Part shown: positions 1-64,000 of the stretch, in pieces
How positions within the stretch are numbered: position 1 is the stretch's first letter
Layout: every line of letters starts with the position of its first letter
Notes under the pieces: model-generated
Databases searched by the model: none
Told to the model about the DNA's origin: nothing
Seen by the model: the letters and a program-made list of their open reading frames with translations, nothing else
Program-made: the position numbers and the translations under genes
DNA from: Selaginella moellendorffii
Lineage: Eukaryota; Plantae; Lycopodiophyta
Assembly (NCBI RefSeq): GCF_000143415.4
Contig: NW_003314309.1
Span: 1 to 64,000, forward strand
Direction of reading: 5' to 3'
DNA length: 64,000 nt

Positions 1-2307
1 CGGTTATCTCTCGGGGTTTTTCCTGCCACCTGGGCCGAGCTTCCATCGCTGGCTCGCCTGGACCTCTCGCAAAACGGCCTCTCCTCGCTGGAAGTCCCTT
101 GCAAAAATACGCAGCTCAACCTCCTCAACTTGAGCTCCAATTCCCTGCAAGAGTTCCCCGGAAATCTCTCCAACCTCAAGAGTTTGGAAAGCCTGGACCT
201 CAGTGGGAACTTCTTAACAGTGGCCGGACTCCCAAAGTTTAGCTTGACGCTGCGATCGCTCAACCTGTCCATCAACAACTTAACTGGGAGCTTTTCCATT
301 GGTGGTAACCTGGGACTGGAGGCACTGGAACTCTCGCAGAACGGACTCAGCGGCTCCATTCCAGAAACTTTCGGGGAGATGACGAACTTGAAGCGCCTGG
401 ACATATCGTATAACAGGTTTAGAGGAGATCTACCCGATATTTGGAGCAAGAACTTGGAGCTCAGGTACATGCGTATCTCCAACAATTCGCTCCATGGTGG
501 TTTGCCACCGAGCTTGAGAAGGCTACGCAAGCTCTCTGTTTTACGCGCTGCATACAACTCTCTCTCCGGGCCACTGGAGCTGGAAGATGGCAACTTTGCA
601 AGCATCGAGGTTTTGAACCTCGGGCTAAACGGGTTTAGCGGAACGATCCCGGCTACGCTGGGAAGCTTGAGGAACTTGAAGATCCTGGTTCTCACGGGGA
701 ATCATTTTAGTGGCGCCATACCACTGGAGCTTGGAAACTGGTCGAACATCAGAGAGATATGGCTTGACAGCAATAACTTGACTGGAACAATCCCAGGCGA
801 GCTCTCGAAGCTCTCGCATCTCCAGAGGGTGGTTCTCACGGGGAATCGTTTTAGTGGCGCCATACCGTCGGAGCTTGGAAACTGGTCGAACATCAGGGAG
901 ATATGGCTCAACAACAATAACTTGACTGGAACAATCCCAGGCGAGCTCTCGAAGCTCTCGCATCTCCAGAAGCTGGTTCTCACGGGGAATCGTTTTAGTG
1001 GCGCCATACCTCCAGAGCTTGGAAACTGGTCGAACATCAAAGAGATATGGCTCGATAGCAATAACTTGACTGGAACAATCCCAGGCGAGCTCTCGAAGCT
1101 CTCGCATCTCCAGCAGCTGGTTCTCACGGGGAATCGTTTTAGTGGCGCCATCCCAGGCGAGCTCTCGAAGCTCTCGCATCTCCAAAGGGTGGTTCTCATG
1201 GGGAATCGTTTTAGTGGCGCCATACCTCCGGAGCTTGGAAACTGGTCAAACATCAGGGAGATATGGCTCAACGGCAATGATTTGACTGGAACAATCCCAG
1301 GCGAGCTCTCGAAGCTCTCACATCTCCAGCAGCTAGTTCTCAGCAGTAACGACATCGGTGGGGAGCTCCCTTCTGGACTCTCCAACTGCACTGAGCTCGT
1401 CGTTCTCTGGCTGGGGCAGAACAAGTTCTCTGGAAATCTCCCTGACAGCTTCGGGAATTTGAGCCGCCTGCTCCTTCTGTCGCTTTCCAGCAACGATCTT
1501 GTCGGTTCAATCCCGGCCATATTGCAAAACATGTCGTCTCTGCAGTTCCTCTTCCTCTCAAACAACAGCTTCAGCGGCTCCATACCGGACTGGCTTCCCA
1601 GGCTCACGAACTTACGAGCCATGGACTTCTCGGTTAACAGGTTCTCTGGGGAGATGCCAGAAAGCATTGGCCGACTGTTTGCCAACGTCCAGCTTTACAA
1701 CAAGAACAAACGGTCTGTGATGATTCAAACCACGCGAGGACTCCTCTACAACGGCTTCGCCTTCCCGACCTCCATAGACTTCTCCTTCAACCAGCTGACT
1801 GGAAGCATTCCAGCTGCCATTGGCGACCTCTACAAGCTCCAGGTGCTGCACCTGAGCCACAACCAGCTAACAGGTCCCATTCCCGAGTCCCTGGGGAAGG
1901 CAAGGAATCTCTCCTGGGTGGAGCTTGCGAGCAATCGTCTCAATGGCTCCATACCATCGTCCGTGGCGGACCTCTCGTTTCTCACCATCTTCGACGTCTC
2001 CAACAACAGCCTGGTGGGACGGATACCTGACAGCCCGCAACTCTCGTCCATGGACGCGGCTCTCTTCGCTGGGAATCACCTCTGTGGCTTGCCACTGACC
2101 AACACCTGTTCGAGCACTGCTATGCCGCCACATAAGCTTAGAACAGAGGGACAAGGTGGTAGCGAACAGGACCAAAGAGAGGTGATAACACTTGTCAGCG
2201 TTGCCATCTTCGTGGCAGCCTTCTTCAACGCGTTCTTCTGGACCTACTTTGCGGCAAACCGCAGAGCTCATTCCCAGCTCTGTGGATGCTGGCAATCAAA
2301 TCTCTAG
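1..2307 (+). CDS. LRR receptor-like protein copy 1 (5' end outside window; LRRs, island domain, TM helix, short tail, no kinase)
   Basis: Frame 1 is open from base 1 to TAG 2305-2307. Plant extracellular LRR consensus LxLxxNxLxGxIP, GNxLCG C-cap, TM VITLVSVAIFVAAFFNAFFW, ~16-aa tail. The listed TTG start at 130 is internal by comparison with copy 2. Confidence 0.9.
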   Translation, partial: RLSLGVFPATWAELPSLARLDLSQNGLSSLEVPCKNTQLNLLNLSSNSLQEFPGNLSNLKSLESLDLSGNFLTVAGLPKFSLTLRSLNLSINNLTGSFSIGGNLGLEALELSQNGLSGSIPETFGEMTNLKRLDISYNRFRGDLPDIWSKNLELRYMRISNNSLHGGLPPSLRRLRKLSVLRAAYNSLSGPLELEDGNFASIEVLNLGLNGFSGTIPATLGSLRNLKILVLTGNHFSGAIPLELGNWSNIREIWLDSNNLTGTIPGELSKLSHLQRVVLTGNRFSGAIPSELGNWSNIREIWLNNNNLTGTIPGELSKLSHLQKLVLTGNRFSGAIPPELGNWSNIKEIWLDSNNLTGTIPGELSKLSHLQQLVLTGNRFSGAIPGELSKLSHLQRVVLMGNRFSGAIPPELGNWSNIREIWLNGNDLTGTIPGELSKLSHLQQLVLSSNDIGGELPSGLSNCTELVVLWLGQNKFSGNLPDSFGNLSRLLLLSLSSNDLVGSIPAILQNMSSLQFLFLSNNSFSGSIPDWLPRLTNLRAMDFSVNRFSGEMPESIGRLFANVQLYNKNKRSVMIQTTRGLLYNGFAFPTSIDFSFNQLTGSIPAAIGDLYKLQVLHLSHNQLTGPIPESLGKARNLSWVELASNRLNGSIPSSVADLSFLTIFDVSNNSLVGRIPDSPQLSSMDAALFAGNHLCGLPLTNTCSSTAMPPHKLRTEGQGGSEQDQREVITLVSVAIFVAAFFNAFFWTYFAANRRAHSQLCGCWQSNL
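685..1332 (+). repeat. In-frame tandem array of 144-bp (48-aa, two-LRR) modules, 4.5 units
   Basis: Module LVLxGNxFSGAIPxELGNWSNIREIWLxxNxLTGTIPGELSKLSHLQx is repeated; a 72-bp hybrid half unit lies at 1117-1188. Confidence 0.95.
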
Positions 2308-4690
2308 CTCGTCCACCATGTTGCTGCCGTCCTTTCTACCTTCCAGTTTGTAATCCATCACGACTGCTTGATGAAGTGAACTCTTCTTATCCGCTTTCAA
2401 GGCCGCCTCCTGTATAGTCTTGAGCTTATCATGATCCTCCCACAGCCCCGCGCTCCGGTAGATGCTCGCCAGCAGAACGTACGCAGCCGAGTCATTCTCG
2501 TCGATCTTCGTCAGTGCCTCAAACGCACTTCCACTTACAGCAGGCCCCGAGGACGCTCCTCCAAACCACAGCATCCGCTCTCAAAGGCATGCTCTCGAGG
2601 ACTTTCAAGGCCTCTTCCAGTCGGTTACGAGATCCACCAAGCTGCTGTAGTGATGAATCCCGCAAACAATGCCAGAGTCCGGGTCCATTGCCTGGAAAAA
2701 CTCCCTGCCTCGTTCAACTAGGCCGCCGTGGCTGCAAGCAATGATGACCGAGACAAACGTGATTGCGTTTGCTCGCACGCCATCTTCTCGCATCTCGCGA
2801 AAGGCTTCGAACACGCGCGACGTGTCACCCTGTTGGCCGAATCCCGTGATCAGTGCATTCCAGGCGACGATATCTCGGACTGCCAGAGATCCAAACAAGT
2901 GCTCGGCCGCACTCATAACTCCGCACTTCCTGTAGAAGTTTACTCCCCACAACTTGATCGTCTTCCAGCCCACGCCTGTAAAGCTCAGCCTGGATTTTCC
3001 TTCCACTCCAAGAGTTCCAGCCCGAGCTCACTCTCACCGTTGTCTATATATCCCTGTATCAAGCTCGTCCAAACGACAACGTCCCGGCTACGCATGCGTT
3101 TGAAAACTGCTCGAGCTTTCACCATATCTCCACACTTGGCATACATGTCCACCAAGCTGCTCCCGACAAATCTGTGCTCGCAGCGTCCAAACTTCGCGGC
3201 GAGAGAATGAATCTCCATCCCCTTTTCTAGGCTCTGGATTCGCACTAGCTTTCCATCTTCTCGCGGAACAGGTGCCTCGGACGCTGAAAGGTGGACGCAG
3301 GCCATGAGCGCAGCAACAAACGTTCTCTCGTCCGGATCGTCCTCCCGAGCCATGCCGAAGAACAGCTCCAAGGCCAGCTTGCTGTCTCCACTTACATCGG
3401 CCAGCCATGCCATCAAAGACCTTGCGAGCTTCCTCTAGCTTCTCACACTTCGCGTACATATCGATCAGAGTGTTCCCCACGAACACGTCCTCACAGCACC
3501 TGTTGTTTGAAGCTTCACCGTGGATAGCCACCCCGGTTTCCAAGCTCTTTCTCTTCACGAGTTTGCCGTCGACATCCACCGCTTCTTCTCGCATTGCCGA
3601 GCTCGCACAGGCGGCAAGCGCAGCAACACACGTCCGAGAGTTTGGACAGCACCCAGATAGCTTCATATCTTCGAAGAACACGAGAGCCAGCTCGCTTTCC
3701 CCGTTGTCCACAAAGCCTTGTTCAAGCTCGTCCAGAGCACGACATCACGACGAGGCATGCTCTCGAAAACCATCCGCGCGTCGACCATGCTCCCACACTT
3801 TGAGTACATGGTACTTGGCTGCTCCCCACGAACATATCTCCGCAGCAGTGGCTTTTCACAGCTCCATCGTGAACAGCGAGCCCCTTCTCCAGGCTCTTCG
3901 TCTTCCCCATCTTTTGGTGGCCTCCTCTTTCACTGCTAGATTCGCACAGCCCTTGGCAGCAGCAACGAAAGTCCGAGAGTTTGGCGAGCAGCCCATCTTC
4001 CCAAAGAACTCGAGAGCGACCTCGCTTTCTCCATTCTCTACGTATCCCAGTATCAACGCGTTCCAGGAGACCACGTCTCGCTGTGGCATCTCATCGAAGA
4101 CCGATCGAGCATCGAGCATGATGCCGCACTTAGTTCGAGAGGAAAACGTCTTCGCTGCAAGACGGTCCCATCTGCTTGGCTTGAGAATGGATGCCTCTGC
4201 CGGTCTCGAGACTAGCCTCCTTGACGAGCTTCCCATCGACCAAAACAGCGTCTTCCTTCGCCGCAAGGCTGCTACAAGCCTTTGCCGCGTCCTGGAGTTT
4301 GGCTTGCAGCCCGACCGCCTGGCTTGCATCCTCTCGAAGAGATCCAGAGCCACATCGCTCTCGCCATTGGAGACGTAGCCCAGCATCAAGGACATCACGT
4401 TTGGGTGAAGAATGCTGTCGAACACGCGGCGGGAATCCTCCATGCTGCCGCATTTCTCGTACATGTCCACCAGCGCATTGACAACATGGATCCCCAGCTG
4501 CTTGCTCTCCGCCGCCTGGGCGTGGATCGCCCAGGCGCAAATTGCCCTTGCGCAAATCCGTTGTGACCTTCAACGCCGACACCTGCTGATCGGGCGCCCG
4601 CGGCGGCGCTGCCGAAGGAGCGAATGCTGGTGCGGCGTATCGAATCGCTGCCGTCGCCAAGTCCCATCCATCGCAAGAACCCTAAAAATT
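2296..4690 (-). pseudogene. PLS-class PPR protein with E domain, multiply frameshifted (copy 1)
   Basis: Motifs split across frames: NALVDMYxKCG, RDVVSWNALI, ITFVSVIIACSHGGLVERG, HYSSLVDL, E-domain AAYVLLASIYRSAGLWE. No DYW domain. 5' boundary approximate. Confidence 0.88.
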
Positions 4691-4785
4691 TGCAAGGAGC
4701 AAAGCCCTAACCCTAAAAACATGGAAATTCAACCAAGGCCGTCGATTCAAGAATATCTGACGGTTGGAAATGAATCGGGGACCAT

Positions 4786-5350
4786 TAGCCTGGAAAAACC
4801 TTGAAGGAAAAATCGCCCTGTACAACCCAGCGTAGCCTTGGATGCGAACAATGTGCCTCAGCGCGCTCGCATCTCCGGTCGCCCTCGAGTTAAGTCGATC
4901 GGAAACACCGCTGAAAACAGGAACTATGGCGATCAAGCGTAATCGCTCTTAAGACTCTTACCTGTTGAGGCAGCGATTCCTGCTACTCCACCGGAGATCA
5001 AGCTCGTCACCATCCTACTCGGGCCTGAAAGTAAACATGCAACGCCAGGAGGCCTAAGCTTGTCAAAACTGTGTTTACCAATGCGATGGTGCTCTGTGCC
5101 TGTAAAGCTTTTCCAAAAATTTCTCACACTCTGAAACTAAAAAAAAATCCAACTTTGAGCGTTCCAGTAGTTGTAGAGAGTGTCATACAAGCAGAAGATT
5201 ATCGCAATCGTTGGGCCTATGGCAGGAGTCAAGTCTGTGGCATTTGGCAGGGAGGAAAACCAATACCAAAAGTGTCGGTCAGAGTTCCTTATAAAGGCTA
5301 AGAAAGCTCTCCTGTTGATGGATTGTGAAAAGGGTGTGATAGATGCGGAT
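4786..5350 (-). pseudogene. Mitochondrial carrier (SLC25) gene fragment, C-terminal part with introns
   Basis: Exon translations HTLFTIHQQESFLSLYKEL*PTLL / AIGPTIAIIFCLYDTL / SLISGGVAGIAAST / AVFPIDL / ALRHIVRIQGYAGLYRAIFP match carrier PxD and GxxGLY[KR] signatures, with GT-AG junctions. Stops and deletions present. Confidence 0.75.
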
Positions 5351-6894
5351 GCACAGCAACATCTACACGCAAGAGCACGAAAGCTGTCAAGGGAACAACC
5401 AACAACAAAGATCACAAAGCTCAAGGTGAGGAAATTTAGGAGAAGACTCAGGAACAAGATCCTGAACATGTAACCACTTTGCAGGTTCCAAGCTTACAGT
5501 CGTCAAACTAGAGTGTAATGTGAACATGACCCAGCAGGAGCAGTCTCCAGCATCTCCACTGCACACAGCAACACCAACACAACTAGTTCTCAATGCTGAT
5601 GCCGATGCCGACAACATGCTGCATCACTGCAAACACCACAGTTGAGAGCATCCTGAGCAGGAGTGACACTGCAAGCCTGAGCTTACATTGGATCTTAAGC
5701 TTGGCATTTCTCCAGTTTGTGGACAAAATGCAGTGTCTCCAGTCAACACCATAGATGCCGATACCAACAGATTTTGCGAGGCTTTTCCACAACAAGCAGA
5801 TGAGCATTTTCATGTGAGACAGAGTCCAATCAACACCTTTGTCTACCAGCCCCTAGATGCGAAGTTCACGAAGATCCAGAACCATATTCTCCAGCTCAAG
5901 AGGAGCATTCGAGGTACAACTTTCTAGGATCTGTATGCACAAAGACTTAGTGCATGAACAAGGAACTCCCCAAGGAGAATGCAGAGCTTTGCAATGAGAT
6001 CCGACAACTCAAGGTGAAGCAGCTGTAGGGATAGGGTGTGCTATAACAAAAGAACAAGTTCAAGAATGAGCTCTCTGAAGTTATAGCAGCAACAAAACAG
6101 CCCAATGCCATGGAGAAGTGAGAGCTTCAAGATGAAACTCAATTCAGTTATCGGAGAAAAGTGGAGCATAAAAAATCAACTTTATATTTAGAAACATCAT
6201 CTAAAGTCTTGAAATTTAAACCTTGAAACTCAAGAACAAGAATGAGTGGCAATTGCCCCATGTAGAATAAATTAAGGGGGTGAGTTAACACTCAAATTCT
6301 CTTGAGTACTCTAAATTTTGAGCAAATGGACGTGCATTAATGATAGAAGGCTGGAGTACAAAGAAAGGGATCGATGCAAATCTTATCTTTGCTTATGACT
6401 TTGACAAAAGGTTTTTTAGGGATTAAAGGACTCAAGTCATTCCTTTTTTACTTTTTATATGTTTATTCATGTCTAGCTGAAGCAAAATGCAAAATCAAGT
6501 CAAACAAATGTAGTAGTAAGCATCCACTCTACTCTCACCTTTTCTCTTTCACTCTTATTTTCTTTCCTCTTTCTTTCTTTTCTAGTACAAGTTTTTAGTA
6601 TATAGACTTTTACCCAAGTTTTTAAGAATGACTTGTTCTAACCTTTAAAGAGATGATTGCAAAATATATGAACTTTCAACATTTAGATTGAGATGGATAT
6701 TTGCCATTTCTTTGTTCGTGTTTCACCTTATAAACTTTTGTATGGTCATTATTTGATATTGCTAATAGAGTTGAGTTTACTTTCATGATTGCTATAGGCT
6801 GCCAATATTAAGTTTTGGGATCAATATTTAATAAGCATTCTTCTACTCATTTGAGTGGAGTTTATTCAGCACTTAAGCTGTATATAAGTGGGAT

Positions 6895-7345
6895 AATAAC
6901 AACACAACAACTTCCATCATCGTCCATCAGTGGAGTACAAAGTGGATGATTTAGTATTAATCTATTTTCCCAATGTTACAGTATATGGTTTGTCTAAGGG
7001 GCTCCTTATTCAATAGAAGGGACCATATTAAGTGTTATGGTAAGTTAAACTGCATGTTTATAAAGTTTGGCAAAACATTCAACAAACTAATCCTCTAAAA
7101 ATTATGCATATGGAATAACTTAAACACTTTGTATAAAGGAATCCACTAATGCCTCTTTCTGATGTTCCTCTAGATCCTAGTTTGTTAACCTGAAAACCTT
7201 AACTACCTTTCATCCTTTTAAAAGAATAGGATGATATGAAGTTTAAGTGTATAGTTATGATGTTGCATATAAATATTAGTATAATTTTTTAGACCACTCA
7301 CTTTTGTATATAAACTATGGTTTTTATGCTAATTAAGATGCATAT
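6895..7345 (+). mobile_element. Decayed integrase C-terminus plus LTR of the gypsy family at 35787-40654
   Basis: Matches the reverse complement of ~35820-36200 (EYKVDDLVL..KGPY, PPT, LTR) with many C>T/G>A changes. A second copy lies at ~33500-33912. Confidence 0.75.
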
Positions 7346-7528
7346 TTCTATATGCACTAAGAGTGCTACTTAAACTATAAGTGAGGCTAGAAAATAAACC
7401 CTTTTAATGGCATCTTTCTCAATATTAGATCAAGAGAGTAATAAATAGCTCAATGAAGTTATCAGTCTTTATACTTTTTCTTAGTGAAAATCTTATAACT
7501 TAATTATTTTATTAGTACTATATACTTA

Positions 7529-7551
7529 ATATATATATATATATATATATA
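7529..7551. repeat. (AT)n microsatellite
   Basis: About 11 AT units; not expanded in the paralogous sites near 24118 and 34152. Confidence 0.85.
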
Positions 7552-7818
7552 AAATCAATATAATTCATTAGGAGTAGGTATAATATAACTAGTAAATTTT
7601 AGAAATATAATAGATTTACATTTAAATAGGACAGAAAAAAAAGTTAAATAGAGAATGGATAAAAATGAAAATACAAGTGATAGAGAAAAAACCATTGATA
7701 TTTTATCACTTGAAAAGTTCTTCACCACTTAAGAAATAATAAGCTTAAATAGAATATTAATTATATAGTATTTTAATTCCTTTAAAAAATTAAATATCCT
7801 TAATTTTTTTAAGGGGAG

Positions 7819-8166
7819 GTAAACTCCTGAATTTTGACTTCTTAGGAGGTCACCCAACCAAGTACCATTCAAACCCAAGAACACTTAACCCAAAATATCC
7901 CAAAATTCTTAACTGATTGAAAAAAAATATACATTCTTATTTATGGGCCCTTTCCTTGTATATTTGAACTATCTCTCAAATTATTTTAAACTTCCCGGGA
8001 GAGGTCACTTAGCCCAGTACCATTCAAACCTAAAGATGCTTAACTCCAAATATTTTAAGACCCTTAACCGATTGAAAAAAGAGGTGCATTCTTATTCATA
8101 GGCCTTTTCTTTCTATATTTAAACCTTATGAACTGTTTCTCGAGTTATTCTCTTTAGTTACTAACA
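7819..8166 (-). mobile_element. Cassandra-like TRIM (5S rRNA-derived LTRs), internally deleted copy
   Basis: Two tandem LTR units, each with a reverse-complement 5S core (7836-7889, ~7990-8045). Ends ctaaca followed by AAAGC. Confidence 0.75.
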
Positions 8167-8231
8167 AAAGCATTTAAGGTTACCAAATGGTATTACTTAA
8201 AAAACAAGCAAGTATATTTTTAAGGGCAATT

Positions 8232-8747
8232 TGTAATGTATGTGGTTTTTACCCTTTATTTTATAGTGATTTACTATAGGATAACCACAAAGTAGAACTT
8301 AAACCCTCTATATGCCACATGTCATATACCACATGTCTAAAGTACAATGGTGTGGAACCCAAGTTTTAGAGCCTTAACCCATTGAACGAAAGAACAATGC
8401 TAAACTTTTAGATATGGACCCAAGGAGCAAAAGTATTAAAGCATGGAGTAACTCCCAAATGTATAACTCAAGTAGCGAAGGGACATGAGCACGGAGCAAC
8501 TTGGAATAGTCCTAAAGCATCTAACATCTCAATACTAAAACCAACACGCAAAATAGAGCCAAACAAAGTTTAATGCTATTTCAATATATTAATGCATAAT
8601 GCAAAAATACTTCACCAATTAACATGGTATGAAACTTGGGGTTTAGATGTAAGCCAAATGCAAAACAAGGACAAACACACAAGTGGAAGCTAAATTATAC
8701 TTCAAGTTAGTTAACCATGTTATCCCTACTATATATTTGGAACCCCC
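8232..8747 (-). mobile_element. Truncated, decayed LTR of the 50315-57590 family, fused to the MSH3 3' end
   Basis: Starts TGTAAT and aligns by eye with 50315-~50868. Confidence 0.8.
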
Positions 8748-11700
8748 AGCTGGAGCTTCACCTTTTGTGCCACTTCCTGCACAGAGCTTTTGTCAAGGTC
8801 TCCTTCCGGGCTCTCCACAAGATATGACATATGGCATGCTTGAACCCGGCTGGGAAAGAGCTTCACCACCTCCGTGACGTTCAAGTAGTGAGTAACGAAG
8901 AGCGTGAAGCATTGAACCTCTTGGAGAAGGTGATGGAGCGTTGCATACGCAATGGCAAGGCTGTCGTGCGTGCTGGTTCCTCTTTCCAGCTCGTCGATGA
9001 CTACCAGCGAGCGAGAAGTTGCCTTGTGGAGGATAGTTGAAGCTTCGCTCAGCTCCTCAAAAAACGTACTGGAGCCCCTCTGGATTCTGTCCATCGCCCC
9101 CATTCTCGTAAACACGGCAACGAATACATGCAGTTTGGCTGTCGCGGCTGGAACATACAATCCTATCTGCACGATAACAAAACATACGGAGTGAAAAGAA
9201 ATAAAGATAGTTGCGAACCTGGGACATGATTGTGATTAGAGCAACTTGACGGATGTAGCAACTTTTACCACCCATGTTTGGACCAGTGATTATTTGCGAT
9301 CGTTCACCCTCACCAGAAAGAACTGTGTCATTTGGTACAAATGCATCTTGCAGAGTCGAATCTAGGACCTGCTCGGAAAGAAATTCCAGTAATAATATTA
9401 AACGACAAGAGCAAAAGAAACAAACCGGATGTCGACCACCTTCTATCTTCAAAAGGCACGCTTCATCCACGAACTCCGGTCGAACATACCCCTGAAGCAC
9501 ATTTTTCATTCAGATAAGCGTTGAAAAACACAAGGAGACAGACCTGATTGCACGAGACAACAGCAAGGGAATAAAGACAGTCGAGAGCTGCTAGTGCCTG
9601 TACTGCAGCCCGGAACTCCATGTGATAGGAGGTAAAGCCAGTCAGGAACATGTCCCATGCTTTGGCGCAAGATATATTTAATTGCTCCTTTGCAAGTGCC
9701 ATTCTTTCCGATGCTTCCAAGACCTCCGGAGGATGATAGCGGTTTGCCTTTTTCGTACTGTTTATTTTAACCCAATCTGCAGGTACACGCTGCGCACATG
9801 GAACCTGAAACTACAAGCTTTTAGCAATCAAATAACTGAATTGAGAAAAAGAAAGTACCTCGACCAAAAACGACATTCCCGAGACGCTCAAGTATTCCAG
9901 ATTTGAACACTTCAACAGTTTCCGATAACTGGGAAGAAAACTTTCGAGATCCTCCTCAATACTTTTTATGTTCTCTTTGCATTCGTCTACCTGAAACACG
10001 ACTTAAACGAAGTCTGGGAAACGATAACAAACCTCGGGATACTGGCCGGCAACAAACAAGTTAATCTTATCCCCAGCTGCTGCTGCCTCTGCATTCAAAC
10101 TTGTCACAAGCTTGTTTGCGTGATCTATCACTGAAGTTGAAGTCACTGCGGAGATTAGCCTGATGAGGAGCGCAGACCTGGCGTCGCGAACCCGTTGAAA
10201 CTGGGACGCTGCTTTCATAATCGCATTAATCACGTTAATGAACTGCAGCAAACATTACGGTCAGAAAAGAATAACCACAGGATTACAGAAAAGGAAAGGT
10301 ACCTCATACGTTGTTGCTGTTTTGTGATAAATTCTTGTGATACCACGCTCAAGATCAGGCAATTTTCCCAGCAGCAACAACGTTGAAGCTAAAGTTGCAA
10401 CTGTTGTGCCTCTGCCTTTATCTCCAATGGATTCGGCAATTTCCGCAACGGCGTCTAAACGTTGAGAAATAAGCATGCGGTCTCTTAACGGATGGGCCAC
10501 CTGAAAATAGACATGAGTGGAAAAAACGAAAAATCCAAGATTGTGACTGAGACCAAACTCCTTACCCAATACTTAAGCAGCCTCGCGCCAAAAGCAGTTT
10601 TTGTGTGGTTCATAAGCCAGAATAAAGATCCGTTTTCAGTACCATCAGTTTGGTTATGTAGAATCTAGAAAGAAAAAACTTGTTACTGGTAAGTAAACAT
10701 CGCATTCAGTGGTTACCTCAAGCTGGCGGATGGTATTGGGCGAGAGCGTCATCTCTTGCTGTCCGGCAAATGGTCGGAAAAGAGCTCCTAAGCGCAATAC
10801 ATTTTCCAGATTAAACTGCTTCAGATAAGCAAATATATGCGCAAACGCAGCAACCACGATTTCTGGCATCGTCATCAACGCCTGCAAACTTCAATTCTCA
10901 TCCGATAGTGTAATCAAGACAACTAGAAAATTACCTCTAACCCTGCATCAACCTTCTCGTCCAGACAGCCTTTCTTAGAAGACGCCAAGCTCCCGTAGAA
11001 GTCCGCAAGAGCAGCAACAGTACCGCCATTTTCAAACGAGTTCTCAGGCGTCTTCTCGGCTCGAACATCCGCTGCGCCTGCATAGTCCATCAACAACTAT
11101 ACAAAAATCACCATCATTCATATACAACCCGATCAGAGAAAAGAAAAAAAAGCTTACCTTCTTTGTAGAAGTGGACAAGGACGCAGATAAAAGAAGTTCT
11201 GCGGGAGCACACGCAAGCAAGCGTGATTCCAGTTCCGTCCTGGTGACAGTGTCCAGAAAGTGGCCATACATCACGTCTCTGGTCGAGGTTTCCACGGCCA
11301 CCACCCCAAATCTAGCATCAAAACTTCCCTTCACTTCATCCTTTCCAGCGTTGGCCTTGTGCTCGGTGATTGCCTCCTCCACAACACACATGATATAGCT
11401 GCTAAGACGAATAGGTCCATCCCTTTCCCCGCTCTCTTCTCCCCCAAGAAACTCCCCGGCCTCGAGCGTGGCCTTGGTATATAGCGCCGAGAGATCTCTC
11501 GAGAATGGGCCAGCCTTGTTCGTCCCGTGAGCTTTGATAGCCGCTGTCTCGGTCTGCTTGACAACGCCAACTTTGTAGCCAGCTTCCACAAGCCTTCTCA
11601 CATGTACGTGCAGCCGGAACGTTGGAACGCTGGCAGTGAGAAAGTTGTGGCTGTAGTAAGCAACGATTCCCAAAACATTGGCTGCTTTCTCCGCATCCTC

Positions 11701-12153
11701 TCCGAAAAATCGAAACTTGTATCCCACCTCGACCATGAGAAGGATGTCTGGGAATGTCTTCTTGAGCTCCACAATCTGCTGCTCCAGAGGAGTAAGCTTC
11801 TCCTTCCCTGACGGTGGCTTTCCATAAAAGGAGGAATTTCCACCACCGCCATCCCTGTCCCCCTCTCCAAGAAGAACATCTACAAACTTTCTACGCCTGT
11901 CTTTAATCGCTTCCCCCGATATTCCGCAATCGGCATCCTTCCCATCGCCCGCCCCGGCGTCTACATCTAAATTCAAGCACCGTTTCTTACTCGCGCTGGC
12001 CGCATTCTCGGCTGATCGCCTGAGATGATGCGGCGATGGCCACACTAGTGTGGGAGCCCGCGATGCATCGGTCTCACCTCGCTTGAAGAAGCTGGGGATG
12101 ATCGCCTGGCCCTTGGCGGCGGCAGCGCCCTCGTCCTTCTTTCTCTTTCCCAT
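8748..12153 (-). pseudogene. MSH3: DNA mismatch repair protein MSH3, 3'-truncated (copy 1)
   Basis: ATG at 12153, PIP box QAIIPSFF, MSH3-type TPLEQQ..EVGYKFRFFGEDA, Walker [20 protein letters not shown], short GT-AG introns. DELGRGTST is altered to DELERGTST and the gene is cut at the TFLYKL position by an LTR. Confidence 0.9.
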
Positions 12154-12182
12154 TCAAAAACTTATAAACCCTAAGATTCTTT

Positions 12183-12800
12183 CTTCAAGCCCAACAATTA
12201 CAGTCACCACCCCAAATCTATGCTTGAGGCTAAGGAGTTTCTGGGAGGAGAAGAGGGCGGTGAAAGAGATGGACCAATTTGTCTTAGCAGCTGGGTGCTG
12301 GCTTTGGTATATAGAGCCCAAGAAATCGAGAATGGGCCAGCCTTGTGTCTTGGTACGCCAACTTTGTAGCCAACTTCCACAAGCCTTCCCATACATGCAA
12401 CTGGAATGAGAAAGCAGCCAATTTTCTTAAAATTTGTTTATCATAGCCACAGCTTTCTCACTGCCAGCGTTCCAACATTCTGCCACATCCTCTCCAAAAA
12501 ATTGAAACTTTGTATCCCACCTCAACAATGAGAAGAGTGTCTAGAAATTTCTTCCTGAGCTCCACAATCTGCTGCTACAGAGGAGTAAGCTTCTCCTTTC
12601 CTGATGGCAACTTTCCATCACAGGAGGAATTTCCATTAGAAGCATCCTGTCCCCAATAACATTTACAAAATTTCTATACCTGTGTGCTTGCAAGAGGATT
12701 TAGATGTAGAAGCCAGGTTGGGGTATTGATTGGCTGCGTTCTCAGCCAGTCGTTTAAGATGACACAGTGATCATTCTTGAAGAAGCTGGTGGCCGCAGTG
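12183..12800 (-). pseudogene. MSH3: Older, scrambled tandem duplicate of MSH3 exon 1
   Basis: Pieces match 11300-12120 (VEVGYKVGV, KAGPFS, ggagtaagcttctcct) with deletions and frameshifts. Confidence 0.8.
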
Positions 12801-12889
12801 CTTAGTATATTTATTATAAGATTCTTATATTATTTTATTAGAATAATATTATTTGTAGGTGAACCATATATTATAGCTTACTTGCTAAA

Positions 12890-14130
12890 TCTGAGAGGGA
12901 GATGGCTAATTATTTTCCTGTTGCATTTGTTAGTTATTGTTAGTTATTGCAAGAGTGAAATTTCTGCAATATTTATCTTTGGAAACTCATTAGTAGATTA
13001 TAGAAATAACAATTACATTTTAAACACTTATGCAAAGGCTAATTTCCTCCCTATGGAAGGAAGTTCCTTAGTGGAGCAATAGGGATATTTTCAAATGGAA
13101 ATCTCATTCTTGATGTTAGTAAAGTGTTTAAATTTGTTCATTTGCAACTTCATATTTAAATCTTTAATTAATTTAACCATTTTTGTCACCCACAAAGAAT
13201 ATATAGCAAAGTGTAAATTATGGAAGTGTTAGATGTGGATTGTTCAATATTATTGAAGTTTGTTGAAAGAAAATTCATTTAATTTTTTAATTTTGTGTCA
13301 AGAGAATCTTTCCAAGCCAAAATTATCCATGACCTATTTATCTACAAGTGAAAAATTTCATTGAAGATAAACATATACTCATATCTCAAATTTGTCTAAA
13401 TGCAACACTAAACATCATAAACAAATCTATATTTTACATAACATATGGATCTAATAATATAATTAATAATTACTATGAACTTGATTCTTTTTTGCCAAGT
13501 TAATACACAATTTTAGAGTTTATTGATATTTTGATGCAACTTTATGATACTCAAATTCTGGTAAACATAATTCATAACTTTAAACTATTATACAACCTCT
13601 TTATTCATGTTATAGATCTTGTATCAAGAAAGAACATGCAAAATTGTGGTTGCATCCTTATTTTCATTAGGTTGTAGCACATTCTTTTTTATCAAACACC
13701 ATTAACTAACTTGCAAAGTAGTAAGCCAGTTTAATTACAAGCTTAATTTAGTCTTATTTTTCTTAGATTAAATTTACTAGGACTCAATATTTTTTATGTA
13801 GACCCTTACACTATATTACTTAATATTGTTCAAAATCTTCTATCATATAGTAAATTTGTATTAAAGAAAAATACTTTATTTTTTAATCATGAAAAATTGT
13901 AATAGGCTTCCCAATTTTTAATGTTGGATGTTGCAACTTTATAAAACCCAATTAAAATACTTTAGTGACAAAATATTTACCCTTGATTTTATCTTATTTA
14001 GATCTAAGAAAGTATATTTATTGGGATCAATTTCATCCTACCTCCAAAATTTATAACATGCTTACTGATCTATTTTGAATGAAAGTGATTATATATATTC
14101 TATCAACATCTAGCAATTAACTTCTATATA
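12890..14130 (+). pseudogene. GDSL esterase/lipase pseudogene (copy 1)
   Basis: AIFIFGNSLVDYRNNNY..AKANF, FSNG, KSIFYITYGSN and WDQFHPT blocks; many stops; very AT-rich. Confidence 0.85.
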
Positions 14131-15205
14131 ATAAATTTTAATACAAATTTTTATTAGTCTGATTTTATTTATAAAATATTATAATAAAATTTTAAACTGA
14201 AGTTTTTAAAAGTAATTTATAAATGTATTAAACACTTTATTATAATAACATTTATGTATAATATTTTAATTTAGAAAAATAAATAACTAGCAATACAAAC
14301 ATATAAATTAATCAAGTTTAGATTATCTGATTTAGATTTTTTAGGAATTTAAAGATTATCTACTAATTTAAGAGCATTAGATTATATATAAAATAGTTTT
14401 ACTTATATTTTCTTCACCATTACTGCTGCTATAGTTTTAAAGATAAAATAATCTTTAATTTATGTAGTGAATTAAATAAAAAATAACACTATTCTTTCAT
14501 AGATATAAATGTTTTTTATCACACCAAATTAATAGTAAACATTTCTTCTATAAACCCTATACAATGTTTTACTATCAAAGTTCATTTAATTAAATTTATT
14601 TTAAAAAATTTGAATTCAGCTTTATTAAACTAAATATACTTATTTGAACCAAAATCTGGGATCACTGCTAGCACACGTGGTTCTTGTTGGATTCCAAGTC
14701 TAGAGATCCTCGTCTTGCTTACCAAATATCTTGACGTCCCCGATCAATCACAAGCTCCACCTGGGTTTCCATTTAGAGATGAAACAAAAGTTTGTAAAGC
14801 AGCGAAGTCCATTTTGATCTTCGTCACGAACTTGTCTTCCGAGAACTAAGAGCCTGTCAAGCCTCTCACGAGTTACAATTCTTCACAGGGAAAAAAGAAA
14901 GAAAACACAGCTCCACCTTGAGTGCCTAAACCACGAACATTGCTCATAGTTACTCCTCGAATTCCAACTCTCAGCAATGCTTGATTGAAAGAACAAAAAG
15001 CTTGAATAAAAAAAACCTTGAATCCTTGAGAGTTCTTACCCTTGATGCTTGGGAGTCTCCAAGGTCTAGAAAAAAAGGAGAGAGAAGCAAAGAAATTGGT
15101 ATTACTGCGTTACCAGTCAGATCCGAGCTCCAAAGAATCCGTCCACATCCTCTATCCTCACAATCCAAAAGAAAAGAGAAAGAAAGCTCAAACCTCTCTG
15201 CAGCA

Positions 15206-18684: not shown

Positions 18685-18955
18685 CGGACTGGTGGAAGTC
18701 AAGTCTAAGTCTTGACCTGTCGAAGTCCACATTCTATCCACCGTGGCCAAAAAATCACCACAAAAAAAAATTGTACAAAAATCTATGTTATATAATATAG
18801 TTGATAGCCCAGTATACCAATGGCAAATCCCAAGTCCCCCACTTTATTGACTACCTCAATTGTGCCAAGAATTGGTTATCAAATGTGCGTGTAAACTCTG
18901 CAAAAAGAAGAACCTCATCTTTCATGATAGCGTTCACTCTTTGATGTTCTGATCC

Positions 18956-25620: not shown

Positions 25621-25622
25621 CT

Positions 25623-50314: not shown

Positions 50315-53300
50315 TGTAGCGCACGTGGTTTTTACTCTTTATCCTATGGTGATTTACCATAGGATAACACCACGAAGCGGAACCTAAACCCTCTTAGTGC
50401 CACGTGACAGATGCCACGTGTCACATGCCACGTGTCCATGCCACGTGTCCACAGGAACCCAAGGTTCAGGGCCTTGGGCCACTGAACGAAGGAACGGTGC
50501 CAAACTCCCAAGCATGGAGCCAAGGAGTGTCGGAACCGAACCACGGAGCAACTCCCGAGCATAAAGCCCAAGGAGCGAAGGAACAGGAGCCCGGAGCGAC
50601 TTGGAACAGTCCTAGAGTAACCAGCATCCCAATGCTAGGACCAGCACGCAAAACGGAGCCAAACGGAGTCTGGCGCTATTTCGGCATACCGGTGGCCTAA
50701 CGCGAGGACATGGGTACTCCACCAACTAGCATGGAATGGAACTTGGGCTTAGACCCAAGCCGGACGCAGAACAAGGACAGGCACGCAAGCGGGAGCTAGA
50801 CTATGCCTCAGGTTGGTCGGCCATGCCCGACCTACCCACTATCCCTACTATACATTTGGAACCCCCCATAGCCCCCCCCCCCCTTGAGGAACACACGCTT
50901 TGGGCTTTCACCCCAAGCCTCCCTTAGTATCAGGAGTTAGTCTCTGGGACAAGCTCGAAACTTACTAAATATGGAATGTCCCTAGATTGCGAATTTGGAC
51001 ATGGGACGAACACCATTGTGTTCAGGCTGATCTCTACATTCCGTAGATATGCCAAATGAGCAAATCTGGACACTTTCCATAAATAGCATTTGGGACCGAA
51101 ATGAGACTAACCCAAAGGGCATGATAGCGAGGGTGTTTGGCAGACACGGTAAGCTATCATCCGGCGATATTGAGGGACCAATCTCAATACGCGAGGGTTC
51201 TTGTCACTAGCCAGTGCAAGACAAAACGAGACGGGAACTCCTTACCGGGCTAAGTATGCTTAGCTAATAACACGTAGGAATTCCGTCCTTATGCTCGTCC
51301 GGTCTAAGTACACTCGAAATGCCCAGTTAACTCCACTAGCACAAGAGGGACTGATAAAGGGTCCAGCAATACCGACCTCCTGCCATCGTGGCAGTAAGGT
51401 AAGAGTGTCCGTAAGGACTAGCCAACAGGTAACTTTCGATACCTGAAGTCACATTCGCGACACTCTCCCCCCCTTGGGAAGATCGACGTCCTCGTCGATG
51501 CATACTCGAGTCTAGAATACCGCCAAGGAAACAACTCCAGGAAAAGTTCACGGTACTCACACTATGTGAGAAATGCACCAACTTAAATGAGTTAGGGGGC
51601 AACCTCTTTGTCTAACGCGGATGCGCTACCAGCTCAGACACCTTCCGGCCGTCGCCGACAAGGAAATGACCAACGGAGTCAGCCACCCTTGCTGCTCTGG
51701 GAGTCACCCAGCTTACAAAAGTGTGATATGCCCCTGCCCGCAGGAACATAGAGAGAGAAGCCAGAGGCCCCAACCCTCCTAAGCAAAGAAACCAAACCCG
51801 TCGGTAAGGTTTAGATAGACTACTGTAAACAGGCAGTTAGAGTTGTTTACACGGTCACGCCCTTTCAACGGAACAAGGAACATCGACAGAGAGGCGGGTT
51901 ATGTGACCAGTCTACAGTAGCTACCCCATGACTAAAGATTTCAACATGCACACGAAGTGCCGAAGCCAGTCTGCCTATACTGGCCCAAACTCAAAGATCA
52001 ATAGATGGACAATATCAAAGTCATAGACAATGATATCTTAGAGACTTAATTATCAGTGAGTATATCTTAGATTAGAACACAAAAGTATTCCAAGTAAGTT
52101 ATCATCCGATAAACTAGTAGTATAGTACAAGAACCACCAAGATCATCAAAATTGGTACATAGGATTCACCATCAAACAAAATTCAATAGCAAGTATATCA
52201 TCAAGTAAACTTAACGATAAAGTTTAACTATTAAAGATTGTAGATAGAATGCCAAACAACTTACAAAAGAGAACTCAAAGAACACCAAGTATCATTGACA
52301 AGCAAGCAAAATGCTCGCGAATGTATCACTTAGAGGAAATAACATTCCAATCTATCAGAACAAACTCAAGCAATAATCAACAGAATAGAATGAATGTGGT
52401 AAGACCAACAAACACTCATTCCTGCCAACTATCATAAAAGCTAATCCGAATAGATCCCAGCCAACAATACCAAGGAACCAGAGTTGCTCAAGCAAGTGTC
52501 AGCAACATCCTATTGATATGTCAAACCCAAGAGACCAATCCAGAGCAAATCACAAAGAACATGTGATATCGCGAAAAGCCACAAGCCATCAAAGAGAACA
52601 ACTAACCACCATAAAAGATCATTAATCATCCCATCAAAAGAGAGATGCATAATCATCATTAAAGAAGGAAGCCACCATCATGAAGAATGGCAACTCATCC
52701 TATATCAACAACAATCAAGCAGCACTTTCAACAAGGACAATCAACTATCTTAGATGATAATTAATCATCACCAATGATTGCCAGATGCAAATACTAACTT
52801 CATCGAAGCTAACAAGCCAAAATGCCTTCCCCCAACAACTCCTAACAAATGGAACAATGAGCATGAAAACTCAAATAACCAAAAGCTCGAAGAAGTCTAT
52901 AGCCAAGTCTTGCCTAATAATGATCACGAGTCTCGCATGGACTAACGTCAATGCTAAAGAAGAAATCATGGTACAACCCACAATATCCTCCTCAACACAT
53001 CTATAAGCTAAACTTCATAATGCAAAGCTAATGAAGAGCATGTCTGCATCAATCCAAAAGTTAAGCATAACAAAGCTATGCTCAACAAGTGATCATCAAA
53101 CGATCCTCCATGAATCCATCTATAGCAAGACGTAACTCACATCATAACAAGCACAAAAAGAATCATCAATGATCGATATATTCCAACTTAAATCCAATAA
53201 AGATTCAAACCTTCCAATATCAATCACTAACTCTTCCGCTTGTAGAGTTAGTATAATCCATGACTAAATCATTTTTCAAGGAAAAGCCAAAGCTTAACCC

Positions 53301-56300: not shown

Positions 56301-57590
56301 CATACCCAAGGAATGAATGCAAACCCATTGCACCAAACGTGTACCCACTCGGATCATCGTTTTCATCTCTGCGTATGCAACGAGACTAGTTGCCCAATCT
56401 CATTGAATAGTACTCGCTGAGACTCGAGCCCTCTGATACCAAATGTAGCGCACGTGGTTTTTACTCTTTATCCTATGGTGATTTACCATAGGATAACACC
56501 ACGAAGCGGAACCTAAACCCTCTTAGTGCCACGTGACAGATGCCACGTGTCACATGCCACGTGTCCATGCCACGTGTCCACAGGAACCCAAGGTTCAGGG
56601 CCTTGGGCCACTGAACGAAGGAACGGTGCCAAACTCCCAAGCATGGAGCCAAGGAGTGTCGGAACCGAACCACGGAGCAACTCCCGAGCATAAAGCCCAA
56701 GGAGCGAAGGAACAGGAGCCCGGAGCGACTTGGAACAGTCCTAGAGTAACCAGCATCCCAATGCTAGGACCAGCACGCAAAACGGAGCCAAACGGAGTCT
56801 GGCGCTATTTCGGCATACCGGTGGCCTAACGCGAGGACATGGGTACTCCACCAACTAGCATGGAATGGAACTTGGGCTTAGACCCAAGCCGGACGCAGAA
56901 CAAGGACAGACACGCAAGCGGGAGCTAGACTATGCCTCAGGTTGGTCGGCCATGCCCGACCTACCCACTATCCCTACTATACATTTGGAACCCCCCATAG
57001 CCCCCCCCCCCTTGAGGAACACACGCTTTGGGCTTTCACCCCAAGCCTCCCTTAGTATCAGGAGTTAGTCTCTGGGACAAGCTCGAAACTTACTAAATAT
57101 GGAATGTTCCTAGATTGCGAATTTGGACACGGGACGAACACCATTGTGTTCAAGCTGATCTCTACATTCCGTAGATATGCCAAATGAGCAAATCTGGACA
57201 CTTTCCATAAATAGCATTTGGGACCGAAATGAGACTAACCCAAAGGGCATGATAGCGAGGGTGTTTGGCAGACACGGTAAGCTATCATCCGGCGATATTG
57301 AGGGACCAATCTCAATACGCGAGGGTTCTTGTCACTAGCCAGTGCAAGACAAAACGAGACGGGAACTCCTTACCGGGCTAAGTATGCTTAGCTAATAACA
57401 CGTAGGAATTCCGTCCTTATGCTCGTCCGGTCTAAGTACACTCGAAATGCCCAGTTAACTCCACTAGCACAAGAGGGACTGATAAAGGGTCCAGCAATAC
57501 CGACCTCCTGCCATCGTGGCAGTAAGGTAAGAGTGTCCGTAAGGACTAGCCAACAGGTAACTTTCGATACCTGAAGTCACATTCGCGACA
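50315..57590 (-). mobile_element. Young non-autonomous LTR retrotransposon (LARD-like), 7276 bp, TSD GTAAG
   Basis: LTRs 50315-51462 and 56444-57590 are nearly identical, TG..CA, Met-i PBS TGGTATCAGAG, PPT at 51463-51475, exact TSD; no ORF over ~90 aa in the 4981-bp interior. Confidence 0.95.
50398..50450. promoter_or_regulatory. Four tandem G-box/ABRE-like motifs (GCCACGTG) in the LTR; repeated at ~56527-56579
   Basis: GCCACGTGAC plus three GCCACGTGTC at 11-14-bp spacing; function not demonstrated. Confidence 0.55.
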
Positions 57591-59356
57591 GTAAGTCAAG
57601 TTAAAATGGTTTAACATTTCACGATTATCCATCTTTAACCAAACCTCAAACTTGCGTTCGCACTGCCTTCAGTCCAATCCAAGAAAATTTTATAAGAGAG
57701 CACGGCAATGATTATTTGAACCAATAGACTTATCCCTATAGTCTTGATTGATCCACTTATAATTATGCCTAGGAATGATCCACTAGTGTCGTGCTAAACA
57801 ACTATAGGCCAACCTATTTACCACTCTTAGAAAACTCAAGGAAGGTTTACTTTTTCCCATGGTACATAGAACAACTCATGGAACCATTGGAATAACTTAT
57901 GGAACCATTGTTAGGCTAATATTAATCCTATTAACTCAAAGTGTAACCTCGAGTTGCTAATGTGCTTCACTCACGAGCCTAAGCACAAACTTGTGTATAA
58001 TGGTACATCTCAATCCTCTTAGGAGCCCAAGAGCAAACTCATATAATAAGGTACAAAAAAGCAACCAAATCCATACCATATTTGGGAGTTTGGCACCATT
58101 CCTTGATTCAGTGGCCCAAGGCCTTGAAACTCAAGCTCCACTCCACTATCTTTTGGACACGTGGCATATGACACATGGTATATGGAGGGTTTAGGTTCCG
58201 CTTCATGGTTATCCTATGGTAAATCACCATAGGATAAAGGGTGAAAACCACATGCGCTACAATTAGTATCAGAGGATGAGTCTTAGCAAGTACTATCCAA
58301 TGAGATTGGGCAACTAATTTCGTTGAATATGTAGAGATGAAAATGATGATCCGAGTGGGTATATGTTTGGGTGCAAAGGCTTCACATTTGTTTCTTGGGA
58401 ACCAAGGAGTAATAGCACTAGAGTATGGAATGAATCCCAAGCGTATAGCCCAAAGAGTGAAAAGATAGAAGCACGAAGCAATTTAGAATAGTTATAGAGC
58501 ATCTAACATCCCAATGCCAGAACCAACACGTAAAATGGTGCCAAATGGAATCTAGCGTTATTTCAGCATATCGGTGGCCTAACATGAGGATATGAGTACT
58601 CCACCAACTAGCATGGTGTGGAACTTAGGCTTAGACCCAAGCCGGATGTAAAATAAAGATAAGCACACAAACGGGAGCTAGACTATGCCCCAAGTTGGTC
58701 AGCTATGCCCAACCTACCCACTATCCCTACTATACATTTGGAACCCCTTATATCCCACTACACCTCCTCCCCCCCTGAGGAACACATGTTTTGAGCTTTC
58801 ACCCAAGCTTCCCTTAGTATCAGGAGTTAGTTTCTGAGACAAGCTCGAAACTTACTAAATGTGGAATACCCCTAAATTATGAATTTAAACATGGGACAAA
58901 CACCATTGTGTTCAAGACAATCTCTACATTCTGTAAATATGTCAAATGAGCAAATCTAGACACTTTTCATAAATAACATTTGGGACTAAAATGAGATTAA
59001 TACAAAGAGCATGATAGCGAGGGTATTTGGCAAACACAGTAAGCTATCGTTTAGTGAATATTGAGGGACGAAGCTCAATATCACAAGGGTTCTTAACACT
59101 AGCAAGTGTAAATCAACAATACGAGTTTCTCGTTACCATGTTTAGTATGCTTGATTTAATAATAACTTAGGATTTCCTTCTTTAGTGCCCTTCTGGCTTA
59201 AGTGCACATGTGCTAACTAGTTTCTCAACTAGCTTGGGTGGAGACCATAAAGGGAACCAACAGTAATAACCTTCTACTGTTATGGTAATAAGGAGAGAGT
59301 GTATGTAAGGATTAGTCGACAAGTATCTTTTGATACCCGAAGTCATATTTGCGACA

Positions 59357-62483: not shown

Positions 62484-64000
62484 ATGGCCATGTCTCTCGC
62501 GGATTTGCTGCTGCCTTTGTTTCTACTCGTCTTTCTCACAAGATCCCGGTCACAGTGCCCCACAAATCCATCTGCAATCGTGAACGACACACAGGTTCTT
62601 CTCTCTCTCCGTGACAGGCTTGGCATCAAAGTGTGGAACGAGACTGCCGATCCAAGAGCATGGCGGGGAGTGGAGTGGAGCTCGGACAACCAAGTGGAGG
62701 GCCTCGCTCTGTCCAGGTTTAATCTCTCGGGAGTTTTTCCTGCCACCTGGGCCGAGCTTCCATCGCTGGCTCGCCTGGACCTCTCGCAAAACGGCCTCTC
62801 CTCGCTGGAAGTCCCTTGCAAAAATACGCAGCTCAACCTCCTCAACTTGAGCTCCAATTCCCTGCAAGAGTTCCCCGGAAATCTCTCCAGCCTCGAGAGT
62901 TTGGAAAGCCTGGACCTCAGTGGGAACTTCTTAACAGTGGCCAGACTCCCAAAGTTTAGCTTGACGCTGCGATCGCTCAACCTGTCCATCAACAACTTAA
63001 CTGGGAGCTTTTCCATTGGTGGTAACCTGGGACTGGAGGCACTGGAACTCTCGCAGAACGGACTCAGCGGCTCCATTCCAGAAACTTTCGGGGAGATGAC
63101 GAACTTGACGCGCCTGGACATATCGTATAACAGGTTTAGAGGAGATCTACCCGATATTTGGAGCAAGAACTTGGAGCTCAGGTACATGCGTATCTCCAAC
63201 AATTCGCTTCATGGTGGTTTGCCACCGAGCTTGAGAAGGCTACGCAAGCTCTCTGTTTTACGCGCTGCATACAACTCTCTCTCCGGGCCACTGGAGCTGG
63301 AAGATGGCAACTTTGCAAGCATCGAGGTTTTGAACCTCGGGCTAAACGGGTTTAGCGGAACGATCCCGGCTACGCTGGGAAGCTTGAGGAACTTGAAGAT
63401 CCTGGTTCTCACGGGGAATCATTTTAGTGGCGCCATACCACTGGAGCTTGGAAACTGGTCGAACATCAGAGAGATATGGCTTGACAGCAATAACTTGACT
63501 GGAACAATCCCAGGCGAGCTCTCGAAGCTCTCGCATCTCCAGAAGCTGGTTCTCACGGGGAATCGTTTTAGTGGCGCCATACCGTCGGAGCTTGGAAACT
63601 GGTCGAACATCAGGGAGATATGGCTCAACAGCAATAACTTGACTGGAACAATCCCAGGCGAGCTCTCGAAGCTCTCGCATCTCCAGAAGCTGGTTCTCAC
63701 GGGGAATCGTTTTAGTGGCGCCATACCGTCGGAGCTTGGAAACTGGTCGAACATCAGGGAGATATGGCTCAACAGCAATAACTTGACTGGAACAATCCCA
63801 GGCGAGCTCTCGAAGCTCTCGCATCTCCAGAAGCTGGTTCTCACGGGGAATCGTTTTAGTGGCGCCATACCGTCGGAGCTTGGAAACTGGTCGAACATCA
63901 GGGAGATATGGCTCAACAGCAATAACTTGACTGGAACAATCCCAGGCGAGCTCTCGAAGCTCTCGCATCTCCAGAAGCTGGTTCTCACGGGGAATCGTTT
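62484..64000 (+). CDS. LRR receptor-like protein copy 3 (runs off the window end)
   Basis: ATG 62484, colinear with copy 2 N-terminus; no stop seen before 64000. Confidence 0.9.
   Translation, partial: MAMSLADLLLPLFLLVFLTRSRSQCPTNPSAIVNDTQVLLSLRDRLGIKVWNETADPRAWRGVEWSSDNQVEGLALSRFNLSGVFPATWAELPSLARLDLSQNGLSSLEVPCKNTQLNLLNLSSNSLQEFPGNLSSLESLESLDLSGNFLTVARLPKFSLTLRSLNLSINNLTGSFSIGGNLGLEALELSQNGLSGSIPETFGEMTNLTRLDISYNRFRGDLPDIWSKNLELRYMRISNNSLHGGLPPSLRRLRKLSVLRAAYNSLSGPLELEDGNFASIEVLNLGLNGFSGTIPATLGSLRNLKILVLTGNHFSGAIPLELGNWSNIREIWLDSNNLTGTIPGELSKLSHLQKLVLTGNRFSGAIPSELGNWSNIREIWLNSNNLTGTIPGELSKLSHLQKLVLTGNRFSGAIPSELGNWSNIREIWLNSNNLTGTIPGELSKLSHLQKLVLTGNRFSGAIPSELGNWSNIREIWLNSNNLTGTIPGELSKLSHLQKLVLTGNR
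63402..64000 (+). repeat. In-frame 144-bp module array, at least four units plus the start of a fifth
   Basis: Units start at 63402, 63546, 63690, 63834, 63978; units 2-4 look identical. Confidence 0.93.

Follow-up and report, generated by a model that had tools for sequence, protein, structure and literature searches.

In tomato, the clustered receptor-like protein (RLP) genes of the Cf-2/Cf-5 (Hcr2) type carry tandem arrays of a conserved super-motif of two leucine-rich repeats (LRRs) and vary in LRR copy number. Recombination has given rise to homologs with 25 to 38 LRRs, Cf-2 has six more LRRs than Cf-5, and the additional LRRs of these homologs fall within the region that determines specificity (PMC4030839, PMC10515242). 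Other clustered resistance-type LRR genes, including the Cf-4/9, NBS-LRR, receptor-like kinase (RLK), and RLP groups, show tandem paralogs, exchange tracts, changes of LRR number, and more nonsynonymous change at xxLxLxx than at framework positions (PMC3924838). The origin of RLPs as truncated clade-X kinases is also documented, with Arabidopsis RLP2 and RLP3 derived from PSY1R (PMC7318236), and an ectodomain of the "island + 4 LRR" architecture is common to angiosperm RLPs and clade-Xb kinases (PMC10834447). Here, we analyzed a 64,000-nucleotide stretch of the lycophyte Selaginella moellendorffii (NW_003314309.1, positions 1 to 64,000; the window), which holds three RLP-type genes, A, B, and C, each with an in-frame tandem array of a 144-bp unit encoding two LRRs. 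We favor, at a probability of about three in four, the explanation that these genes form a young, lineage-specific cluster of intronless RLPs that originated through kinase loss and in which one two-LRR unit was then amplified in frame. The analysis establishes the anatomy and ancestry of the genes, recurrent change in unit number, and purifying selection at buried positions.

The 144-bp period was detected in all three genes by Tandem Repeats Finder: at 685-1155 in gene A, with 72- and 216-bp sub-periods reaching 1342; at 19874-20748 in gene B (6.1 copies, 96% matches); and at 63402-64000 in gene C (4.2 copies, 98% matches). Units were delimited by translation in the 24-amino-acid (aa) register, each corresponding to 144 bp, 48 aa, and two LRRs, and the arrays occupy the same frame in each of three closely similar open reading frames on the forward strand. 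Gene A (1 to 2307; a 768-codon open frame with its stop at 2305-2307) is cut at the 5′ end by the start of the scaffold and not by any biological event. Its array (685 to 1332) consists of units A1 (685-828), A2 (829-972), A3 (973-1116), and A4 (1189-1332), with a 72-bp hybrid LRR at 1117-1188, between A3 and A4, whose first half is of type a and second half of type b, joined at a G-x-I-P motif. Gene B (18956 to 21712) is complete, and its array (19874 to 20737) holds six 144-bp units with a higher-order repeat of 432 bp. Gene C (62484 to 64000), of the same type as A and B, has a complete 5′ end and leaves the window at its end, where its array (63402 to 64000) shows four units followed by the first 23 bases of a fifth. 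The readable frames of A, B, and C are all open (768, 918, and 505 codons, with zero stops), and every length change among the genes is a whole number of LRRs, in frame.

The arrays comprise 9 to 12 LRRs, and their units are 92 to 100% identical in DNA. Identity between same-type LRRs of the gene B array is 89 to 99%, and the two LRR types inside one unit share 31% identity; the twelve other 24-aa LRRs of this gene average 32%. The identity among array LRRs is far beyond chance. These results bear out two claims of an earlier, sequence-only reading of this DNA, namely, that three near-identical receptor genes carry an in-frame 48-aa array and that the copies differ mainly by the number and order of this two-LRR unit. 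The same reading had counted 4.5, 6, and at least 4 units in A, B, and C, respectively; the figures for B and C stand, and that for A is refined to four units plus the 72-bp hybrid LRR. All of the variable residues it listed within the unit (T/R/M, R/H, P/S/L, E/D, W/C, D/N, S/N/G, and N/D) are present.

Gene B is intronless and encodes a 918-aa protein ordered as a signal peptide, a cap, 27 plant-type LRRs, an island, four LRRs, one membrane helix, and a 16-aa tail. Its N terminus is hydrophobic and is followed by the LRRs, matching the expectation of a signal peptide and an extracellular run of 24-aa LRRs. Pfam LRR_1, LRR_8, and LRR_4 matched the protein with E values of 1e-54 to 1e-84; no kinase family matched it, and no kinase homology was found downstream of the gene. 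A cytoplasmic kinase domain is absent from both A and B (the 3′ end of C lies outside the window), and with its single membrane helix, short tail, and lack of a kinase, the gene B product has the makeup of an RLP. The island is an irregular stretch with a disordered core (residues 717-736), after which come exactly four LRRs starting at residues 739, 763, 787, and 811. The last of these contains the QxxT/S motif that contacts SERK co-receptors (Q-L-S-S, residues 830-833). The island + 4 LRR clade is marked by a negatively charged segment next to the membrane on the extracellular side (PMC10834447); at this place, gene B has a mildly acidic stretch, which is weak, as the 12 residues nearest the helix hold three acidic residues and a single basic one (net −2). 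An AlphaFold2 model of the gene B product (mean predicted local distance difference test score [pLDDT] of 88.8; predicted template modeling score [pTM] of 0.75) is a regular solenoid with one short strand per 24 residues, in which the array reaches a pLDDT of 95 to 98, and its best fold matches are the ectodomains of GSO1, FLS2, PEPR1, BRI1, and the RLP RXEG1. We infer that the products of A, B, and C are working cell-surface receptors. Antisense open frames also span the arrays, at 18934-21090 (reverse strand; 718 aa) and 702-1685 (reverse strand; 327 aa); these are most likely a side effect of repeating a stop-free unit and not genes.

To place the cluster, we turned to its relatives. Among 5.8 billion proteins, the closest were two S. 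moellendorffii proteins only, P0001 and P0002, and a word search with the C-terminal 319 residues of gene B returned no further Selaginella relatives. Identity to the nearest relatives, the Selaginella paralogs, was 76 to 81%, and angiosperm matches reached at most about 43%. P0001 is an intronless LRR kinase of 1056 aa whose kinase domain has the BRI1 kinase as its best match (4e-78). A third paralog, P3 (L003:16889-18979, GL377565.1), lies 3.7 kb downstream of P0001; it is an intact, intronless 696-aa RLP with no Pfam hit on record and is likely the first kinase-less derivative of the P0001 kinase. P0002 (L002:10001-12140, GL377569.1) is an RLP-like model. Compared with its paralogs, its 5′ LRR region has a gap of 8 bases, and the public model is not directly translatable from the DNA of the locus; either the copy is frameshifted, or an artificial intron bridges a sequencing error. 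P0001, P0002, and P3 each hold exactly one 48-aa unit; the expansion is therefore specific to the window cluster. A and B also lack one 24-aa LRR that P0001 and P3 have, with the junction at a G-x-I/V-P motif.

Outside the array, the window genes share 87 to 90% nucleotide identity with P3, P0002, and P0001. Among themselves, A and C are ∼99% identical, and A-B and B-C are 96 to 97% identical. Homology of the window genes to P3 and P0002 continues into a downstream pentatricopeptide repeat (PPR) gene, whereas homology to P0001 ends before the membrane helix, which points to a single loss of the kinase, after which an RLP-plus-PPR block was copied to this location. Within the window, the block forms part of a segmental duplication of ∼19 kb that carries the RLP, a PPR fragment, and a MutS-like fragment; its first copy occupies 1 to 17620, its second extends from 18856 to about 32200, and its third starts at about 59726. 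The PPR fragments lie downstream of gene B (22548 to 23249, reverse strand) and, as its sister, downstream of gene A (3088-3711), and a PPR neighbor is likewise found beside P0002 and P3. One open frame with MutS domains I and II only is present per 19-kb copy (11044-12153 and 27970-28806, both reverse strand); these are probably pieces of a MutS-type gene that traveled with the RLP. The ancestry of the cluster resembles that of Arabidopsis RLP2 and RLP3 in that an RLP with an island + 4 LRR ectodomain resulted from kinase loss in a receptor of the BRI1/PSKR/PSY1R type (PMC7318236, PMC10834447). It differs in being an independent, lycophyte-specific event that was followed by amplification of LRRs within the gene. 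Unlike the clade-Xb kinases (BRI1, PSKR, and PSY1R), A and B have no kinase domain, and their paralog P0001 has one.

The relations among individual units suggest how the arrays grew. A single base separates A1 from C1, and 2 bases separate A2 from C2; C2, C3, and C4 are identical in DNA; A3 equals B6; B2 equals B5, and B1 differs from B4 at 1 base; and A4 retains the states of the single-unit paralogs. Distinct unit variants stand in a fixed order, four plus the hybrid in A and five in B. This sharing of units requires no fewer than three separate expansions, together with one contraction: the ancestral array grew to at least four unit types, an amplification that includes a 432-bp higher-order duplication took place in B only, a triplication took place in C only, and A lost a single LRR. 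In the four-gamete test, 4 of the 91 informative site pairs failed, each involving a site at a unit boundary, which places exchange at unit borders and gives no sign of shuffling within units. The earlier description of the units as shuffled is accordingly weak. Shared, identical, and hybrid units together fit unequal, out-of-register recombination with exchange between paralogs, so that the unequal crossover or gene conversion proposed in the earlier reading is largely right as a mechanism. Exchange between genes is also suggested by a near-identical B-C tract at 18956 to 19364 (forward strand), with 2 differences in 409 coding bases; the 493 bases that follow contain 23 differences (4.7%), and upstream of the tract, the two genes are ∼89% identical. 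On this evidence, the tract is likely the product of gene conversion between paralogs. High unit identity and recurrent change in copy number are all that would speak for a programmed or somatic diversification within the life of the plant, similar to that of the lamprey variable lymphocyte receptors (VLRs), and we consider such a process scarcely credible here. In the germline, the reading frames are complete, no unit of the window lies outside the three genes, and the window contains neither the incomplete germline gene nor the flanking donor LRR cassettes of the VLR system. Moreover, units are orthologous between copies (A1 with C1, A2 with C2, and A3 with B6), which indicates that the arrays are inherited.

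The sequence-only reading had regarded the cluster as a candidate for an undescribed system, a claim that does not survive comparison with tomato. Like Cf-2/Cf-5, the window cluster combines clustered RLP genes with an array of a two-LRR super-motif, an LRR number that differs between homologs, and the island + 4 LRR architecture. Given that such arrays with copy-number variation are already described in tomato, the cluster represents a new example and not a new system. The two are not linked by common descent, however: the window genes come from a Selaginella RLK family with a BRI1-like kinase, and because each of the Selaginella paralogs has only one unit, the array arose independently of tomato Hcr2. 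The window arrays are also shorter and younger than those of Cf-2/Cf-5. Further precedents came from angiosperm RLP-type proteins, 4 of the 227 proteins examined (P0123, P0205, P0124, and P0183), which carry near-identical arrays of 24-, 48-, or 72-aa units (90 to 95% identical over at least 96 aa; 2.7 to 6.2 units). These arrays are in frame and occupy a similar place in the ectodomain, but they belong to unrelated lineages and have unrelated unit sequences. With the clustered resistance-type LRR genes, the window cluster shares tandem paralogs, exchange tracts, changes in LRR number, and a higher level of nonsynonymous change at xxLxLxx positions than in the framework (PMC3924838); its copies differ mostly by the repeat number of one unit and not by scattered substitutions.

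We quantified selection on the 14 full units, with surface exposure assigned by LRR register together with DSSP strand positions and exposed codons defined as positions 2, 3, 5, 7, and 8 of each LRR (ten codons per unit). The units contain 24 variable sites, with 15 nonsynonymous and 11 synonymous changes (omega of ∼0.42). Nonsynonymous changes fell at exposed codons in 8 of 15 cases, compared to an expected 22% (P = 0.009), in agreement with the earlier suggestion that amino acid changes are concentrated at exposed xxLxLxx positions. Omega at exposed codons was 0.86 and not above 1 (P = 0.74). Positive selection is thus unsupported, and the further suggestion that selection has re-tuned the binding surface is not sustained; lower constraint at the x positions explains the enrichment equally well. 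Buried unit codons showed 7 nonsynonymous and 9 synonymous changes (omega of 0.26; below neutral, P = 0.007), suggesting that the arrays are translated under constraint while surface positions are free to vary. Outside the array, the comparison of B with P3 gave a pN/pS of 1.63 at exposed versus 0.30 at buried positions (Fisher test, P = 7e-6); the excess over 1 at exposed positions was not significant (P = 0.18).

Several observations weigh against the favored explanation, and there are two further rival accounts. The first is that the arrays are a neutral by-product: the genes would be redundant, young, and perhaps unexpressed duplicates in a decaying 19-kb duplication, and the arrays would expand and contract solely through the instability of near-identical tandem DNA, without consequence for binding. 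We regard this as possible, though clearly the less probable account. Outside the array, comparisons among A, B, and C give an overall pN/pS of 0.75 to 1.16, a range compatible with diversification as well as with relaxed constraint on redundant young copies. The neighbors of the RLPs in the duplicated block are gene fragments (PPR pieces of 206 to 336 aa in the window versus 841 aa at the P0002 locus, and MutS domains I and II only), and omega at exposed unit codons does not exceed 1. In addition, the exact gene B protein is absent from a collection of 15 billion proteins, and no window protein was among the protein-search matches, so public protein sets may lack these genes. The gene B product is an exact match to a called gene, with its sole occurrence in public assemblies on GL377613.1 of GCA_000143415.2. 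Decay without function sits poorly with the open state of all readable frames, with length changes that always amount to whole LRRs in frame, with the purifying selection at buried unit codons, and with the strong contrast between exposed and buried positions against P3. A separate point concerns the membrane helix. Angiosperm RLPs use a GxxxG motif in this helix to bind SOBIR1, and the motif is a feature of the island + 4 LRR clade (PMC10834447); the gene B helix contains no GxxxG and no glycine at all, only AxxxA spacings, and in this it also departs from Cf-2/Cf-5.

The second account is an effect of assembly, in which the arrays were miscounted or A and C are haplotypes of one locus that scaffolding has set in tandem; we judge it unlikely. 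All unit counts derive from a single gapped scaffold assembly. Base 1 of scaffold GL377613.1 is the first base of the window, so that record and window positions coincide, and gene A lies at this scaffold end. Genes A, B, and C reside on three separate contigs, separated by N gaps and linked by scaffolding alone. The four gaps (15206-15577, 31657-31756, 33077-33176, and 33913-34021) are all intergenic; as none of the four touches a gene or array, frame and continuity across gaps are not at issue for the arrays. The first gap (372 N) is flanked by a direct repeat of ∼370 bp (14259-14625 versus 15579-15946, 88% identity), both arms of which match a single stretch of the sister copy (30554-30928). 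On sequence grounds, this gap is probably an unmerged overlap of contig ends, imperfect as the match of its flanks is. Units C2 to C4 form a perfect 432-bp repeat. The divergence between A and C, about 1% of sites, is reportedly near that between the two haplotypes of this S. moellendorffii assembly; if A and C are haplotypes, then their difference would be allelic variation in LRR copy number. A miscount, in contrast, cannot create multiple distinct variants that keep to a fixed order, and a perfect 432-bp block would be spannable by single long Sanger-type reads. With its divergence of 4 to 5% from A and C, at least B is a true paralog.

Under the favored explanation of kinase loss followed by in-frame amplification, the family descends from an LRR receptor kinase whose gene lacked introns and whose product joined a BRI1-like kinase domain to an ectodomain of the island + 4 LRR type; one deletion then removed the kinase and left an RLP. 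A block with this RLP and part of the neighboring PPR gene would then have been copied to GL377613.1 and duplicated again in units of ∼19 kb. In this cluster only, LRRs 11 and 12, the 48-aa unit that is single in other members, would have been amplified in frame, likely through out-of-register recombination or replication slippage between 144-bp units. This history includes at least three expansions (an ancestral one to four unit types, one specific to B, and the triplication specific to C), together with one in-register loss of a single LRR that would have produced the hybrid LRR in A and with exchange between paralogs. The predicted outcome is a regular LRR solenoid of greater length, in which one surface patch recurs and the N-terminal LRRs lie farther from the island and the co-receptor end. 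By analogy with tomato Cf-2/Cf-5, repeat number may alter what the receptors bind. It would be a far more ambitious claim, and in our estimation a distinctly improbable one, that in this vascular plant, reported to have very few nucleotide-binding LRR receptors (NLRs), the cluster diversifies mainly through fast, recurrent change in unit number, with receptor length varying between individuals and haplotypes and setting specificity, as a convergent lycophyte counterpart of the Cf-2/Cf-5 mechanism and a main route to receptor diversity in the lineage.

Other elements occupy the space between the genes of this window, which has a GC content of 41%. Ty3/gypsy-type pieces (RNase H, aspartyl protease, and zinc knuckle) lie between B and C at 36972-39341 and 44955-45671 (reverse strand). 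Direct repeats at 50303-51462 and 56432-57590 (1160 bp, 99.2% identity, 6.1 kb apart) have no long open reading frame between them; the pair looks like a young, non-autonomous element of the long terminal repeat type, and a third copy is found at 58435-59356 (79%). A search of Rfam at gathering scores found no RNA family anywhere in the window; over positions 5000-35000, neither 5S rRNA nor any other family appeared at an E value of ≤0.1.

The cluster opens no new mechanism or question. It adds probable receptor genes that are missing from the searched public protein sets. It also provides a clean and datable lycophyte example of kinase loss to an RLP and subsequent in-frame LRR amplification, both known routes, and indicates that variation in the style of Cf-2/Cf-5 arose independently outside seed plants.

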